Of a DNA stretch of 64,000 nt, positions 23,480-28,655 are shown piece by piece. A model generated the notes under the pieces. The model was not told the DNA's origin. It saw only the letters and a list, made by a program, of their open reading frames with translations, and made no database searches. Position 1 is the stretch's first letter. Each line of letters opens with the position of its first letter. Made by a program: the position numbers and the translations under genes. The stretch is taken from the sequence record PP496439.1. One strand, 5' to 3'.

Positions 23480-24265
23480 ATGAGTGCTGTACCTAATCGT
23501 GTGTCCCTAGTGGACAAGCGCATCTTCAACGGAAAGGCTGATGTCAACGCCTTGCTACCGCTTCGGTATCCGTGGGCCTATGACGCCTACGTGAACGCGA
23601 ACAAGAACCACTGGCTTCCCGGCGACATCCACCTCGATCTGGATCGAGTCAACCATGAACATCAGTCGTACTGGCCTGCTGTCAGCCGGTTCCTGATCAG
23701 CGTAGCCCAGCGCGCCGAGATCGATCGACAGCACATGCTCTTCGTGTATCGGGCCACCACGGCGCCCGAGGTTCGTCAGCGCTTCCTCCGCATGGGGCAG
23801 GAAGACACCATTGCCATCATGCTGGCGCAAGACATGGGGCTGGCACTGGAAGACTTCATCCCGTCTCCAGAGGTGGTGTTGTACAAGACGGAGAAAGCCT
23901 ATCTGGCCGGGCTCATGGAACTGATCGAGCGTAAGCTCTTGTCCGTGGCCGAAGGCAAGTACATCCTCGAAGAAGTACCGGGGGTGCACCAGAATATACG
24001 CAAAGCAGTTGAGAACATCCACCGCGACGTGGACTCTCAGTTGGACTTCCTGTTCACCCTGCTGCGCACCTTCCTTGGCGAATGCGAGGTCAGCTCCTAC
24101 CGGGGTTGCAACACGCAAGCGTTCTGGCAGAGCAGCAACCAGTACCACGCCCACCTGAACTCGATTGTTCTGAACGTTCTGACGGGGGCGCCGGTTACCC
24201 CTACGCCGTATCAGACACAGGTGGTCGCAGACAACCAAACCAAAGACACACTGACCTGGGACTGA
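23480..24265 (+). CDS. Degenerate NrdB paralog (beta-prime): metal ligands and radical Tyr lost, L-x-W-D tail kept
   Basis: NHWLPGDI matches NHWLPQEI; EEAFHTESY becomes EDTIAIMLA; RDESGH becomes RDVDSQ; ends TLTWD versus GLEWD. Confidence 0.8.
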   Translation: MSAVPNRVSLVDKRIFNGKADVNALLPLRYPWAYDAYVNANKNHWLPGDIHLDLDRVNHEHQSYWPAVSRFLISVAQRAEIDRQHMLFVYRATTAPEVRQRFLRMGQEDTIAIMLAQDMGLALEDFIPSPEVVLYKTEKAYLAGLMELIERKLLSVAEGKYILEEVPGVHQNIRKAVENIHRDVDSQLDFLFTLLRTFLGECEVSSYRGCNTQAFWQSSNQYHAHLNSIVLNVLTGAPVTPTPYQTQVVADNQTKDTLTWD

Positions 24266-24267
24266 CT

Positions 24268-25242
24268 ATGACCGTTCTTACTCACGTAAACCCGCACGAA
24301 CATGAGTGGGCGTTGGAAAAGACCTTGGCGTCAAACTCGAACCATTGGTTGCCCCAAGAGATTGGACTGTCCACCGACATCCTGCAATGGAAGACCGGAC
24401 AGTTGAGCGACGACGAGATGCGCATGGTCAAGCGTAACCTCGGGTTCTTCTCCACCGCTGACTCGCTGGCCGCGAACAACATCATTCTTGGCACTATACG
24501 CCACATAAAGAACCGTAACTGTCGCCACTACCTGTTCCGACAAGCGTATGAAGAGGCATTCCACACGGAGTCCTACGCGTACGTGATCGAGAGCCTTGGT
24601 TTGGATCAGGGTGAGATCTTCAACGCGTACAACGAGATCGACTCGATCCGGGCCAAGGACGAATTCCTTCTGCCGTACATCGAGGTGCTGACCGATCCGG
24701 CGTTCCAAGCGGACACCATCGAGAACGTCCAGATCCTGCTCAAGTCACTTTTCGCTTTCGCGTGCATTATGGAAGGTCTGTTCTTCTACGTCGGCTTCGT
24801 CCAGATGCTGTCTCTGGGCCGTCGCAACAAGCTGCCCGGCTCCTCGCAAGAGTTCCAGTACATCCTGCGCGATGAGAGCGGCCACTGCAACTTTGGCATC
24901 GACCTGATCAACACGATCAAGCGCGAGTACCCAGGCGTGTGGACTGCGGAACTCCAGAAGGAGTGCACCGACATGTTGCGCACCGGCGTTGACCTGGAGC
25001 AAGCCTATGCGGTAGATACCCTGCCCAACGGTGTGCTGGGTCTGAACGCGGACAACACACGCCAGTACCTGGAGTTCATCGCGGACCGCCGCTGCATTCA
25101 GGTGGAGCTGCCAGTACAGTACAACCAGAACGACAACCCGTTCCCGTGGATGTCGGAGATGGTTGACTTGAACAACGAGGAGAACTTCTTCGAGAAGAAG
25201 GTGCTGGCATACCAGCAAGCCGCCGGACTGGAGTGGGACTAA
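24268..25242 (+). CDS. nrdB: Class Ia ribonucleotide reductase beta subunit
   Basis: Full ligand set: STADS, EEAFH, radical Tyr (HTESY), IMEG, RDESGH; C-terminal AYQQ...LEWD. Confidence 0.95.
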   Translation: MTVLTHVNPHEHEWALEKTLASNSNHWLPQEIGLSTDILQWKTGQLSDDEMRMVKRNLGFFSTADSLAANNIILGTIRHIKNRNCRHYLFRQAYEEAFHTESYAYVIESLGLDQGEIFNAYNEIDSIRAKDEFLLPYIEVLTDPAFQADTIENVQILLKSLFAFACIMEGLFFYVGFVQMLSLGRRNKLPGSSQEFQYILRDESGHCNFGIDLINTIKREYPGVWTAELQKECTDMLRTGVDLEQAYAVDTLPNGVLGLNADNTRQYLEFIADRRCIQVELPVQYNQNDNPFPWMSEMVDLNNEENFFEKKVLAYQQAAGLEWD

Positions 25243-25243
25243 C

Positions 25244-25345
25244 ATGATCTATACGTGTCCGAAGTGTAACCGGTTGCATTCAGATGGGACAAGCAACTTC
25301 GAGCTAGTCGTTCTGTGCCGGTATTGCAACCCACTGAAGGGGTAA
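25244..25345 (+). CDS. 33-aa Zn-ribbon micro-protein (absent from the ORF track)
   Basis: MIYTCPKCNRLHSDGTSNFELVVLCRYCNPLKG; GGAG inside the nrdB 3' end; two CxxC motifs. Confidence 0.55.
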   Translation: MIYTCPKCNRLHSDGTSNFELVVLCRYCNPLKG

Positions 25346-25357
25346 TACGGTCCGGTA

Positions 25358-25390
25358 AATAGGGGAGTGAGCAATCGCTTCCCTATTTTT
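25358..25390 (+). terminator. Terminator-like hairpin with GCAA loop
   Basis: AATAGGG...CCCTATT stem plus T run. Confidence 0.65.
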
Positions 25391-25407
25391 ATGTCTGGAG
25401 TTTGATA

Positions 25408-25650
25408 ATGGCTACCGAGACTAACGACATCTTCGTTGTAATGGCAGACGTGCAGTATGAATCGTCCACACCGGTTAAAGCCTTCCGGGTAAAGCGTACC
25501 GCCGAAGCCTTCCGCAAGAAATGCGAGAAGTATCAGGAGGGTTATTCCGCTGGATTCAATGATCAGAAGTGGAAGGACAAACACCCGGCAGGTATCAACA
25601 ACTACAACGCCGACAGCTACTCACTGGAAGTTATCCCCTTCGTGGGCTAG
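25408..25650 (+). CDS. Small hypothetical protein, paralog of 26506-26805
   Basis: GGAG RBS; shared FVV.A...YE...P.K.FR.K and W...HPAG....AD motifs. Confidence 0.75.
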   Translation: MATETNDIFVVMADVQYESSTPVKAFRVKRTAEAFRKKCEKYQEGYSAGFNDQKWKDKHPAGINNYNADSYSLEVIPFVG

Positions 25651-25659
25651 GAGTCTTCT

Positions 25660-26094
25660 ATGAAGCGGCCAGTGTGGATCACTTTGACCGGTAAGACCAA
25701 GAAGCACAACGTCCCCTACCTGATTGATCAGCGCTACGTGCGTGAGTGGATGCACTGGGGACTGAAGATGTATCCCACGCAATTCCCACCTCCACCGGAT
25801 ACACTGGTAGGTTCCCAATCTACTTCGTGGAAGTTCTGGGACATTCGCAAGTTCTACCTGTGGAGCGTTAAGTGCACTTGCATCTACACCGGTGAAGTGC
25901 ACCACCTTGGCGGCGGTTCGTGGCTGACCAAATCTCAAGCGAAAGTCCTGCAAGACGATGGGATCGAGCTGGGCATCTTGTTGAATACCATTCCAGAGTG
26001 GGTGGTAGATATGGGACTGCTCAAGACTTGGTGCTTCGTACAGGACCTGTTCGCGTTCCGTAATCCCTTCCCTCAACGGGAGAAGAACAAATGA
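25660..26094 (+). CDS. Trp-rich hypothetical protein
   Basis: AGGAG RBS; overlaps the next start (ATGA). Confidence 0.75.
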   Translation: MKRPVWITLTGKTKKHNVPYLIDQRYVREWMHWGLKMYPTQFPPPPDTLVGSQSTSWKFWDIRKFYLWSVKCTCIYTGEVHHLGGGSWLTKSQAKVLQDDGIELGILLNTIPEWVVDMGLLKTWCFVQDLFAFRNPFPQREKNK

Positions 26095-26321
26095 CTGCTC
26101 GTTCAGGCATTACCCATTCCTACAAGGAAACCAAGACGGTAGACATCACTAATCTGGAGTCCCCCGGTCGTGCCATGTCCAACGGCAAGATCGTGATCAG
26201 TGTGACGGATAAGGGAGAGTCCACCATCGAGTGTACCTTTGGTGGGCATCAGTGTGGTATGGTGACTGATAAGTCTTCACTCTACCAACTGCGAGACGCC
26301 CTTACTGATCTTCTGGACTAG
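26091..26321 (+). CDS. Small hypothetical protein
   Basis: Translationally coupled to the upstream gene. Confidence 0.7.
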   Translation: MTARSGITHSYKETKTVDITNLESPGRAMSNGKIVISVTDKGESTIECTFGGHQCGMVTDKSSLYQLRDALTDLLD

Positions 26322-26328
26322 GTGATCT

Positions 26329-26502
26329 ATGACCAACATAGTCAACTTCCCGAAGAAGGATACCACTGAGCCGGAGAGTACTGAGCTTGTGCTGAACGAT
26401 CAGCAGATGGATGAGTTCGAACGTAATCTGGAGCAGCGGCCTCCCGAAACCAATCTGTCACTTCAGCGCTTGCTAAGGCGCCCTACCCGCTGGAAGGAGT
26501 AG
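26329..26502 (+). CDS. 57-aa protein resembling only the C-terminal toxin-binding half of TacA/AtaR (DUF1778) antitoxins (absent from the ORF track)
   Basis: AGGTGA RBS; LVLNDQQMDEFERNLEQRPPETNLSLQRLLRRPTRW; no RHH domain; no GNAT toxin nearby. Confidence 0.7.
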   Translation: MTNIVNFPKKDTTEPESTELVLNDQQMDEFERNLEQRPPETNLSLQRLLRRPTRWKE

Positions 26503-26505
26503 ATT

Positions 26506-26805
26506 ATGCCGGACTGCTTTGTGGTACATGCCGAAGCGATGTACGAAGCCCCTGTACCCATCAAGGTGTTCCGGCGCAAGTACAAAGCCAAACTCTTCAT
26601 CAAAGAACTACGCGCGTATCATGCGCAGCGTCCCGTCTTACCCTCCACGTTCAACGAGTTAGGTGTGGGGTATCCCGAAAGCATCTACGCCGCGCACATG
26701 GATGCGTACCACATGGATCACATGGACTGGTCTAGTTCCCATCCGGCGGGTATGGCCGGAGAAGGTGCTGACGACTTCACATTCACCCAATTACCTTTGG
26801 AATAG
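26506..26805 (+). CDS. Small hypothetical protein, paralog of 25408-25650
   Basis: AGGAG RBS; shared motifs as above. Confidence 0.75.
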   Translation: MPDCFVVHAEAMYEAPVPIKVFRRKYKAKLFIKELRAYHAQRPVLPSTFNELGVGYPESIYAAHMDAYHMDHMDWSSSHPAGMAGEGADDFTFTQLPLE

Positions 26806-26808
26806 AAA

Positions 26809-27906
26809 ATGAACGATGATCTGAAAATCACAGAGGTTAACTCTGTGAAGGAATACGATGAACACGTAAGAAACCTGCTGGTTACCTTGTTGGGGCTCGG
26901 TTCTTCCGCCACCCGCAACGATCAAGGTACCCGCAAGCTCGGCGCCACGTCGATCAGCTTCAACCTGCTGTCGATGTACCCCTCGATCCCGATGACCACG
27001 CTACGCCCGATCTCGTGGGCCAGTATCCTCGGTGAGATGCTGGGTTTCATCCGGGGTGAGACCAATGTCGAAGCGTTCAAAGAACTGGGCACCAAAGTCT
27101 GGAATGCTAACGCTAAGGAACCCGCGTGGAAGAGCAATGCACTCGCACCTAACGAAGGTGACCTCGGACCAATCTATGGCAAGCAGTGGCGCAAGTGGGA
27201 TGACATCAAGGTAGCCCCCTATGACACTGATCTGTCCACGCTGGGCTACACAAAGATGGGCCGTCTGGACGATGAATTGGGATGGGAGACCGTAGGACTA
27301 CCGCTTAACGCGGTGTGGCGTCGTGAGGTTGACCAGTTGATGGAAGCCTTGAACCGCATCAAGGCCAACCCCAACGACCGCCGTGCCGTCATCTCGGCGT
27401 GGAATCCCGGTGACATGGATTTCATGGCTCTGCCACCCTGCCACGTGATGATGCAGCTGACCACGGTGCCTTACGCCCAGCACAAGTACGGCAGCTACAC
27501 AGATGGGGTCAACGAATACGAAGCTGACATCGAGGTAGTACCCGAGTTCGTACTCAATCTGGTCGTGACCCAGCGCAGCCAAGACACTCTGCTCGGTCGA
27601 GCGTACAACATCCCGGCGTATGCTACCCTGCTTCGCCTGTTCGCTCACCTGTTGGAAATGGCGCCGGGCAATCTGGAGTTCAACGTCGGCGACCAGCACC
27701 TGTACAGCAACCATGGGGCAGCCGCCGACGAGGTAACTTGCCGAGAAAGTCTGGACAAGGATGAGGAAGGCGAAAAGCTATTCCAACTCTCTATCGTCGG
27801 CGTGGACAAGTTCGAAGATTTGGACACCCTCACCGCCGACAACTTCATTCTGACTAATCAGGTTACGCATGGTAAGTTGGAATCCGACACCAAGATGACT
27901 GTGTAA
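26809..27906 (+). CDS. thyA: Thymidylate synthase
   Basis: DLGPIYGKQWR, NPNDRR, ALPPCH, QRSQD...YN (dUMP-specific Asn), GDQHLY. Confidence 0.93.
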   Translation: MNDDLKITEVNSVKEYDEHVRNLLVTLLGLGSSATRNDQGTRKLGATSISFNLLSMYPSIPMTTLRPISWASILGEMLGFIRGETNVEAFKELGTKVWNANAKEPAWKSNALAPNEGDLGPIYGKQWRKWDDIKVAPYDTDLSTLGYTKMGRLDDELGWETVGLPLNAVWRREVDQLMEALNRIKANPNDRRAVISAWNPGDMDFMALPPCHVMMQLTTVPYAQHKYGSYTDGVNEYEADIEVVPEFVLNLVVTQRSQDTLLGRAYNIPAYATLLRLFAHLLEMAPGNLEFNVGDQHLYSNHGAAADEVTCRESLDKDEEGEKLFQLSIVGVDKFEDLDTLTADNFILTNQVTHGKLESDTKMTV

Positions 27907-27917
27907 GGGGAATCGCC

Positions 27918-28655
27918 ATGAGCACCAATCCACCAATCAACGCCCGTATCCTCAACCTGAAACCCCGTTCCGTTCAAGTCTACGACTTGATTCTGGACGA
28001 CACGGATGATCGCACACTGCCCGAACAGATGCGAAGCGTGCTTCAAGGCATCTTCGACGACCATCCTGTAACCGAATATGGTGAGAAGAGTACGGTTATC
28101 GACACCGAGCACCTGACCAAAGCAACCATCGTCGCCGTGATCTACGACCCGAGCATCCGCGTCGCCTATTTGGTCGGGCAAGAGCGTCGGGACGAAATGA
28201 TCTCCGGCGTGTTCCCCGGTTCGCCGGCTAACCCTGACTTCTATCTGAGCACCGACGCTCAAGAGTGGACGTCGGCCTTCTTCAACATCAACGGCAACTG
28301 CCTGAAAGAACTGACCGAAGACACGTTGTTCGGCTGGTTCGCCAACGCCATCGAGCGTGGCAAGTCAGACGGCATCAGCGATACCTACAACACGCTGGGT
28401 ATCGTTCAGCCCGGCCTGCAAGGTATAAAGAAGGGCATCCCGCTGATGTCCCTGATCGAGGCCGGCATCATTCCGCACACTGCGTACTGGTCTGATCCGC
28501 AGGCGCCTGAATACGTCAAGTGGCTGGAGAAGCAAGGCCGGGTCGCTAAGCTCTGCGCACACGCCGACGCCATTGCGGCAGACGGCGCGGCAGCCCTGCT
28601 CGACGAGAAGCAGTCGTACGAATCTATCAACCCAAAGGAAGAGAAGGAGTCCTGA
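27918..28655 (+). CDS. Hypothetical protein
   Basis: GGGGA RBS; strong phage-like codon bias. Confidence 0.75.
   Translation: MSTNPPINARILNLKPRSVQVYDLILDDTDDRTLPEQMRSVLQGIFDDHPVTEYGEKSTVIDTEHLTKATIVAVIYDPSIRVAYLVGQERRDEMISGVFPGSPANPDFYLSTDAQEWTSAFFNINGNCLKELTEDTLFGWFANAIERGKSDGISDTYNTLGIVQPGLQGIKKGIPLMSLIEAGIIPHTAYWSDPQAPEYVKWLEKQGRVAKLCAHADAIAADGAAALLDEKQSYESINPKEEKES

Follow-up and report, generated by a model that had tools for sequence, protein, structure and literature searches.

A 57-codon gene among the nucleotide-metabolism genes of a Pseudomonas phage

The DNA analyzed here (the window, 64 kb in length) corresponds to bases 1-64000 of Pseudomonas phage vB_PpuM-Amme-1 (PP496439.1), with 100% identity and unchanged coordinates. 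This phage is a 202-kb myovirus whose isolation host is Pseudomonas putida KT2440/PaW85. We describe one of its short genes, Amme1_00029, which GenBank annotates as a hypothetical protein and whose product of 57 amino acids (aa) resembles the C-terminal, toxin-neutralizing arm of the DUF1778 antitoxins that are paired with GNAT toxins. The gene lies within tightly packed plus-strand genes bounded by those for the ribonucleotide reductase small subunit and thymidylate synthase. The features of the locus are the following, where P0002 is a phage relative and P0018 a genuine DUF1778 antitoxin, both introduced below.

26329..26502, plus strand: arm gene Amme1_00029, 57 codons (stop included in the coordinates), ATG start and TAG stop; candidate antitoxin-arm protein lacking the ribbon-helix-helix (RHH) domain
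26320..26327, plus strand: Shine-Dalgarno sequence AGGTGATC of the 57-aa open reading frame (ORF), read directly
26329..26379, plus strand: N-terminal leader, codons 1-17, predicted to be disordered by AlphaFold2 (AF2) and placed with the help of alignments
26380..26499, plus strand: antitoxin-arm-like segment, codons 18-57, as indicated by hhalign, AF2 and mapping via P0018 onto KacA
26091..26321, plus strand: Amme1_00028, 76-aa ORF, N-module homolog and a separate ORF in another reading frame, from BLASTP, alignment and the AF2 model of P0002

A strong ribosome-binding site precedes the 57-aa ORF, with a spacing of 6 nt from the AGG core to the ATG. The first two bases of AGGTGATC are at the same time the last two bases of the stop codon of the upstream 76-aa ORF. 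The AGGTGA core 5' of the ATG is retained in the related phages Voja-6 and KoPa-5 despite a different preceding gene, and the site is therefore seen in two upstream contexts.

Among nine related P. putida phages, four carry the arm gene (Amme-1, Pori-4, Voja-6 and KoPa-5). The Amme-1 and Pori-4 copies have identical nucleotides. Compared with Voja-6/KoPa-5, 14 of the 56 shared codons of Amme-1 differ, comprising 11 synonymous and 3 nonsynonymous differences. All three nonsynonymous differences to Voja-6 fall within codons 1-16, and codons 17-56 hold 9 synonymous and 0 nonsynonymous differences to Voja-6/KoPa-5. About 76% of the possible single-base changes in codons 17-56 are nonsynonymous, and on this basis a simple binomial calculation gives P 2.7e-6 for the excess of synonymous changes in these codons (1.6e-5 for the whole ORF), with the selection statistics drawn from two sequence types. 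The 57-aa ORF is a real gene, and its arm is under purifying selection.

An earlier note on this DNA had proposed a 57-aa ORF with a good ribosome-binding site that the ORF prediction had missed. The gene (26329..26502, plus strand), its Shine-Dalgarno sequence and its constraint bear out the first part of that proposal; the second part is correct for the first ORF track and incorrect for the public record, where the gene is annotated as Amme1_00029.

Resemblance to the toxin-neutralizing arm of DUF1778 antitoxins

The only Pfam match of the 57-aa protein was PF08681 (TacA1; E 0.075, 13.4 bits), with residues 17-51 on profile positions 44-77 of 80, and the Voja-6 copy scored 13.1 bits against the same profile. 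Single-sequence searches of PHROGs, NCBIfam, PADLOC and the PDB gave no relevant match, and a word-indexed search of 5.8 billion proteins returned only the query itself. An exhaustive phmmer search of 1.84 billion representatives unveiled one informative relative, P0002 (115 aa; E 6.2e-5), whose C-terminal module (C-module) aligns pairwise with the 57-aa ORF at E 3e-15 and 56% identity. A small family was built by searching with P0002 and then, in 5.8 billion proteins, with the family profile. Beyond the family itself, all four remaining matches of that profile (26-27 bits) were PF08681 antitoxins, P0018-P0021, with Pfam E-values for this domain of 6e-25 to 2e-21. The last ~38 residues of these antitoxins align end to end with the phage module, and both C-termini are reached. 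Their database-wide E-values of 1.5-3.2 are nonsignificant alone, as these matches were picked from billions of sequences; pairwise, the antitoxins matched the phage module with E-values of 9e-8, 3e-8 and 4e-7. Nine positions are invariant across the phage arms and the P0018-type antitoxins.

Furthermore, we compared the phage arms with an independent test set of five diverse plasmid DUF1778 antitoxins (from Methylococcus, Rhizobium, E. coli, E. marmotae and K. michiganensis), selected by similarity to P0018 and not to the phage module, none of which belongs to the P0018 subfamily. With a 13-sequence phage-arm profile, hhalign matched these antitoxins with 95.2% probability (P 2.6e-8, score 41.25) over 36 columns, at template positions 63-98 of 99, which is their extreme C-terminus. 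In the controls, 200 column shuffles scored 9.9 +/- 2.3 (maximum 20.0) and the reversed alignment scored 8.4.

A short, helical and charged peptide could come to look like a DUF1778 tail by accident or convergence, and the subthreshold Pfam match, the database-wide E-values of 1.5-3.2 and the failure of the family profile to reach a solved antitoxin are all in keeping with such an origin. However, chance resemblance is already largely refuted and seems to us extremely improbable: the hhalign score of 41.25 stands against a shuffle maximum of 20.0 and a reversed-alignment score of 8.4, for antitoxins that had been selected independently of the phage module; the two sides stay co-linear through ~36 columns, up to the C-terminus of each; and all four twilight matches belong to one family. 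We therefore hold it very probable that the phage protein is homologous to the DUF1778 C-terminal region. By these comparisons, the peptide, which is short and largely disordered, appears to be derived from, or to share ancestry with, the toxin-neutralizing arm of DUF1778/TacA-type type II antitoxins.

The 57-aa protein lacks the RHH domain: PF08681 positions 1-43 are unmatched, and ~17 residues of predicted disorder precede the arm. The leader formed by codons 1-17 is unrelated both to DUF1778 and to the linkers of the fused relatives described below. RHH_1 and NikA-like matches, below the Pfam cut-offs, are seen in genuine members such as P0018 and are lacking in the 57-aa ORF. With a subthreshold Pfam score, no RHH domain and no toxin operon, Amme1_00029 is outside the DUF1778 family as defined. 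The earlier note had read a DUF1778-like C-terminus and no RHH domain from the letters, and had suggested a PF08681 or profile comparison as the check; the subthreshold PF08681 match and the significant profile-profile result now agree with the former, and the disordered residues before the arm with the latter.

Several candidates from these searches were set aside. Alignment A5 used as a profile against the PDB matches antitoxins, although trivially, since it includes genuine DUF1778 rows. A tblastn match at E 5 in Rhizobium phage P9VFCI runs antisense to the annotated genes, and matches in Sinorhizobium/Rhizobium plasmids fall inside an MFS transporter gene; both were treated as chance. P0003 (2137 aa, 10 matched stretches) was taken as a repetitive or low-complexity match.

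P0018 offers a route to solved structures. Its gene forms a canonical operon with a 174-aa GNAT gene, the two overlapping by 4 nt, and its PDB matches are the following.

7zg6_A: DUF1778 protein, E 5e-22
7f37_C: DUF1778 protein, E 1e-18
7ak7_C: deposited as 'CopG family transcriptional regulator', E 2.5e-14; presumably a TacA
6ajm_C: deposited as 'DUF1778 domain-containing protein', E 8e-8; presumably AtaR
5zgn_A: KacA, E 5e-5
7ak8_G: 39-residue 'TacA1 antitoxin peptide', on P0018 residues 61-96, E 0.07

We take 7ak8 to be the toxin-peptide complex attributed to Grabe et al. (2021), a study cited in PMC9431474. The extent of its chain G, P0018 residues 61-96, aligns with residues ~20-56 of the window protein. 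The two are thus alike in the segment that they cover, and an extent of this kind has been deposited alone as an antitoxin fragment; however, the TacA1 peptide is a piece of a full antitoxin made in the laboratory, and the window protein is the product of a natural gene.

The KacA arm consists of strand B (52-56), helix C (57-70), a PPAP linker (71-74) and helix D (75-86), and it wraps KacT in a high-affinity interaction, for which the contacts N57, E58, S60, W61, V64, A67, I68 and P72 have been named (PMC6698736). We mapped KacA onto the window protein through the ungapped KacA-P0018 offset and alignment A5. It is important to consider that this mapping is alignment dependent, as BLASTP sets two gaps differently in helix C. 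The predicted equivalents in the window protein are the following.

KacA strand B: residues 18-22
KacA helix C: residues 23-36
KacA linker: residues 37-41 (proline linker)
KacA helix D: residues 42-53
KacA contact N57: N23
KacA contact E58: D24
KacA contact S60: Q26
KacA contact W61: M27
KacA contact V64: F30
KacA contact A67: N33
KacA contact I68: L34
KacA contact P72: P39

Among the mapped contacts, chemical character is retained at the polar cap, at three hydrophobic positions and at the proline, and the tail after the equivalent of helix D carries an invariant Trp at codon 55. In the AF2 model of the 57-aa protein, the N-terminus is disordered and residues 24-36 and 43-50 are helical (mean predicted local distance difference test [pLDDT] 67.6; below 50 at residues 1-4 and 8-14). 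Two arm helices, split at the prolines, recur with low confidence in the model of P0002. A model of two helices, with low confidence outside them, fits an arm that folds on binding. In terms of alignment and prediction, the strand, helix C, proline linker and helix D of the antitoxin arm are matched by residues 18-53 of the window protein. Its likeness to the DUF1778/PF08681 antitoxins TacA, AtaR and KacA lies in the order of strand, helix, proline linker and helix, in the prolines and hydrophobic contacts and in the near-terminal Trp. It differs from them in having no RHH domain for DNA binding and dimerization, no adjacent GNAT gene, a phage location and a score below the gathering cut-off.

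A two-module family and its phage carriers

Most relatives of the arm gene encode a longer protein. P0002-type proteins form nine 90%-identity clusters of 106-120 aa, in which an N-terminal module (N-module) precedes the C-module, which is the arm. At BLASTP E 4e-10, the 76-aa ORF just upstream of Amme1_00029 matches the P0002 N-module with 37% identity over 46 aa. The window thus encodes the two modules in two ORFs, 7 nt apart in different frames, and not in one polypeptide; each ORF was aligned with the fused relatives on its own. The earlier note had described the peptide as stand-alone, which holds for the ORF itself and fails for its setting, as the upstream ORF is homologous to the N-module that is fused to the arm in relatives; the two-module family was absent from that note.

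In the AF2 model of P0002, the N-module has strands at 2-6, 22-29, 34-40 and 43-49 and a helix at 51-68, with pLDDT of ~80-93. Foldseek with this model found no significant match in the PDB (best E 0.06, to strand-helix shapes like those of Pur-alpha or the XRCC4 head) and, in BFVD, only uncharacterized small phage proteins (best E 2.5e-4).

The N-module also occurs without the arm. Four clusters of N-module-only genes share the end point of the window's 76-aa ORF, and at three fetched loci, all on large metagenomic phage contigs, such a gene lies in tandem 5' of a gene of 115 or 118 aa. These N-module-only genes of 74-76 aa overlap the downstream gene by ~11 nt (L009/L010, 6001-6562; L012, 3001-3577; L031, 1357-1614). 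The downstream genes were taken as fused members of the two-module family, and the tandem arrangement looks like a duplication with the arm lost in one copy. A weak, partial match to the N-module (E 0.02) was also seen in the 85-aa gene PaBG_00293 of the jumbo phage PaBG.

The arm, in turn, is found without this N-module. It is carried on two further unrelated N-termini, those of P0016 and P0017, and it is present alone in Voja-6/KoPa-5, which have the arm gene and lack the N-module gene; it therefore occurs on at least three different N-termini or alone. P0017 (L033, 5001-5303) is encoded in an early accessory region after pRha, Gp157 and NinB-like genes, on a P22/lambda-like contig whose gene content includes pRha, NinB and tailspike. 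Taken by background, the arm is found in three unrelated kinds of phage: ~200-kb P. putida myoviruses, contigs of 136 and 277 kb, and the P22/lambda-like contig. The large carrier contigs (136 and 277 kb) include one uncultivated virus genome (UViG) from IMG/VR, the only carrier contig in that database. Every carrier whose context can be judged is a phage or phage-like, the P0016 contig (983 bp) being too short to judge. Among 50,697 cultured phage records, the arm was seen only in the four P. putida phages; other phage records show a few DUF1778 matches, which fall on the portion of the antitoxin that contains the RHH domain.

The existence of fused relatives of 106-120 aa, together with two modules that lie 7 nt apart in different frames in the window, could point to a formerly fused gene, broken in two by a frame change, of which the 57-aa ORF would be a functionless, decaying remnant. 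This scenario is very improbable in our judgment. The differences between related phages (11 synonymous against 3 nonsynonymous, none of the latter in the arm) are not those of a decaying gene, and the ORF has kept its own start codon and strong ribosome-binding site in two contexts. N-module-only genes recur (four clusters, besides the weak partial PaBG match at E 0.02), and the arm persists alone in Voja-6/KoPa-5. Because N-module-only genes recur, the arm sits on other N-termini, Voja-6/KoPa-5 have it alone and the carriers are phages only, the split between arm and N-module looks like a modular architecture and not like simple decay.

The surroundings of the gene vary among the related phages. 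The interval 25243-26808, flanked by the genes for the small reductase subunit and for thymidylate synthase, is a variable slot (compared with L002, L004, L005, L006, L025 and L026) that holds five small genes in Amme-1/Pori-4 and two in Voja-6/KoPa-5. The arm gene of the latter pair has a different 6-residue tail, and in Aura, Peetri and Illi-2 an unrelated 109-aa gene replaces the 76-aa and 57-aa ORFs. The junctions of the slot reuse a stop-plus-AGG ribosome-binding-site motif. Two small plus-strand genes at 25408-25650 and 26506-26805 are mutually paralogous (BLASTP E 9e-12) and both match phrog_37665 and phrog_10284, families of unknown function. They flank a three-gene cassette of 144-aa, 76-aa and 57-aa ORFs and could promote its gain or loss among related phages. 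A terminator-like hairpin (14-bp stem followed by a T-run; 25357-25388, plus strand) precedes the small-gene block, inside a 165-nt gap 3' of the reductase small-subunit gene, and no sigma-70-like promoter was found in 24900-28000.

The bounding genes have peculiarities of their own. Thymidylate synthase (26809-27906, plus strand, 365 aa) matches its Pfam profile with residues 33-358 on 245 profile positions and therefore carries ~80 extra residues as insertions; the length of this gene ranges from 1098 to 1167 nt among the related phages. Between the genes for the large and small ribonucleotide reductase subunits lies a 261-aa hypothetical gene (23480-24265, plus strand), which is overlapped in another frame by the mechanical small-subunit ORF that reaches upstream to 24082. 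Farther away, at ~158682-197668 and 86902-88002 of PP496439.1, annotation alone lists QueC-like, QueE-like and GTP cyclohydrolase genes, as well as a 'CRISPR/Cas system associated protein'. The first three suggest 7-deazaguanine DNA modification, and both this modification and the last protein may bear on anti-defense.

Toxin partners and biological meaning

No partner toxin was found beside the arm gene. In tblastn, the GNAT partner of P0018 matched the 64-kb window at best with E 0.35 over 25 aa, and bases 1-64000 carry no acetyltransferase annotation, which agrees with the earlier note in that no GNAT gene lies in the window. Likewise, the flanks fetched around the relatives' arm loci contain no called GNAT or acetyltransferase gene. 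The sole acetyltransferase in the whole Amme-1 genome is Amme1_00177 (274 aa; PP496439.1 150662-151486, minus strand), ~125 kb from the arm gene and followed by the gene of a DUF5406 protein. Its GNAT domain (PF00583, E 8.8e-14) covers residues 133-233 only, and the N-terminal region of ~130 residues has no Pfam match.

As the genome encodes this GNAT-domain protein, the arm might control Amme1_00177, the two forming a split toxin-antitoxin-like pair internal to the phage. This is improbable. Amme1_00177 is a generic acetyltransferase, with RimI-type and N-terminal acetyltransferases as its nearest solved relatives and no TacT, AtaT or KacT chain matched in the PDB, and it has only the acetyl-CoA motif in common with a toxin GNAT, over 18 aa at E 0.01. 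Its gene lies away from the arm gene and is present in 9/9 related phages (partially in Peetri) irrespective of the state of the arm gene, which is found in 4/9.

The reading that we favor, with a probability of about 0.5, is that Amme1_00029 would be an orphan antitoxin arm that plugs a GNAT tRNA-acetylating toxin of the host and has no repressor function. It starts from a real and constrained ORF with arm homology, without an RHH domain or an adjacent toxin gene, and with phage carriers wherever the context can be judged. From there, we infer binding to a GNAT toxin, a host toxin as the target and a benefit to the phage. In such a scheme, the peptide would be produced from the packed gene block among the phage nucleotide-metabolism genes and would fold onto the host GNAT tRNA-acetylating toxin as the antitoxin arm does. 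The bound toxin would then stay inactive once the labile antitoxin of the host is lost during infection. The peptide would thereby act as an orphan antitoxin or antitoxin mimic that is unable to repress the host operon. The earlier note had already put forward a mimic directed against GNAT toxins; in structural terms it is supported by the arm homology, by the missing RHH domain and by a window free of any partner toxin gene, and the anti-toxin function itself keeps the standing of a proposal drawn from sequence.

Different kinds of observations weigh against this interpretation. At the level of homology, the PF08681 score of 13.4 bits is below the gathering cut-off of 21, and family profile A1 alone matches no solved antitoxin in the PDB. 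A PF08681 match is absent in 7 of the 8 metagenomic relatives scanned in A1, and that scan reported two PF08681 matches, the second of which was not identified by the tool. The nearest antitoxin tail occurs in one of 185,579 representative genomes, a Nitrospira metagenome-assembled genome and not a Pseudomonas. Concerning the host, none of the 15 predicted toxin-antitoxin loci of KT2440 is described as GNAT, acetyltransferase or DUF1778 (PMC7280312), and the chromosomal toxin-antitoxin systems of P. putida have been reported to have no role in phage defense (PMC7616413). No PADLOC model is matched by genuine DUF1778 antitoxins or by a GNAT toxin, and the literature searched yields no link of GNAT-DUF1778 systems to phage defense. 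Additionally, GNAT-RHH pairs are mostly cognate specific, with occasional cross-neutralization at ~34% antitoxin identity (PMC9431474); therefore, a mimic should require a closely matching toxin.

That no target toxin was found in the laboratory host would also be expected if the arm, although descended from an antitoxin arm, had been exapted to bind a non-GNAT partner, either a host or phage protein or the product of the upstream N-module gene, in a two-module function unrelated to toxin-antitoxin systems. Most relatives fuse the arm to a conserved N-module of four strands plus a helix, in which no function was detected, and the phage arms form a tight family of their own with invariant positions, both of which agree with such a change of role. 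We consider it plausible but rather unlikely. The positions equivalent to the toxin contacts of KacA keep their chemical character, and purifying selection keeps the arm in Voja-6/KoPa-5, where the N-module gene is missing. Moreover, a combination with at least three unrelated N-termini is more easily reconciled with a portable protein that binds an external target than with one dedicated to a single N-module.

An orphan antitoxin arm would join a known type of phage protein. T4 Dmd counters RnlA/LsoA, and pseudo-ToxI is a further phage antitoxin mimic. Phage orphan antitoxins or mimics also include AdfB of ICP1 and the DarG-like enzymes that act against DarTG (PMC11481870, PMC11825919). Being phage encoded, related to antitoxins and without a cognate toxin, Amme1_00029 is an orphan antitoxin in this descriptive sense. 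It shares with AdfB, the DarG-like enzymes, Dmd and pseudo-ToxI the features of an antidote carried by a phage without the poison, accessory and patchy among related phages. In contrast, those proteins were shown by experiment to act on other toxin families, and ours is known from its sequence; what it offers is the binding arm of a type II antitoxin alone, with a presumed target family that has no documented role in defense. An annotation-level precedent exists in the lytic Klebsiella phages vB_KpnM_VAC13 and VAC66, where remote DUF1778-like proteins are listed under 'TA system' (toxin-antitoxin) with E 3.1e-05 (PMC10100988). They resemble Amme1_00029 as phage products of remote DUF1778 likeness, but, compared by description, they are table entries only, with no architecture or test described (PMC10100988). 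We found no description of an arm-only, RHH-less and domain-shuffled version of an antitoxin in the literature searched.

The presence of the gene in 4/9 related phages and the absence of a target in KT2440 fit an accessory counter-defense function against toxins of natural hosts, and they fit the rival explanations equally. In a broader and more tentative view, to which we give somewhat less than even odds, the arm may be a portable 'GNAT-toxin plug' that unrelated phages put on different N-termini or make alone. DUF1778-GNAT pairs would then be a natural abortive-infection defense, and arm-only decoys would escape autoregulation.

Few type II toxin-antitoxin systems are as abundant as the GNAT-DUF1778 modules, which in the literature examined are discussed for persistence, stress responses and plasmid biology. 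If the proposal is true, DUF1778-GNAT systems, whose biological role is debated, would act as abortive-infection defense in nature. A constrained arm-only gene in unrelated phages offers genomic, if indirect, evidence that phages meet GNAT toxins, and a natural peptide of 40 residues would provide a handle for asking which toxins are involved. It would also represent a minimalist route to counter-defense, in which the neutralizing arm is captured alone and the DNA-binding domain is left out.

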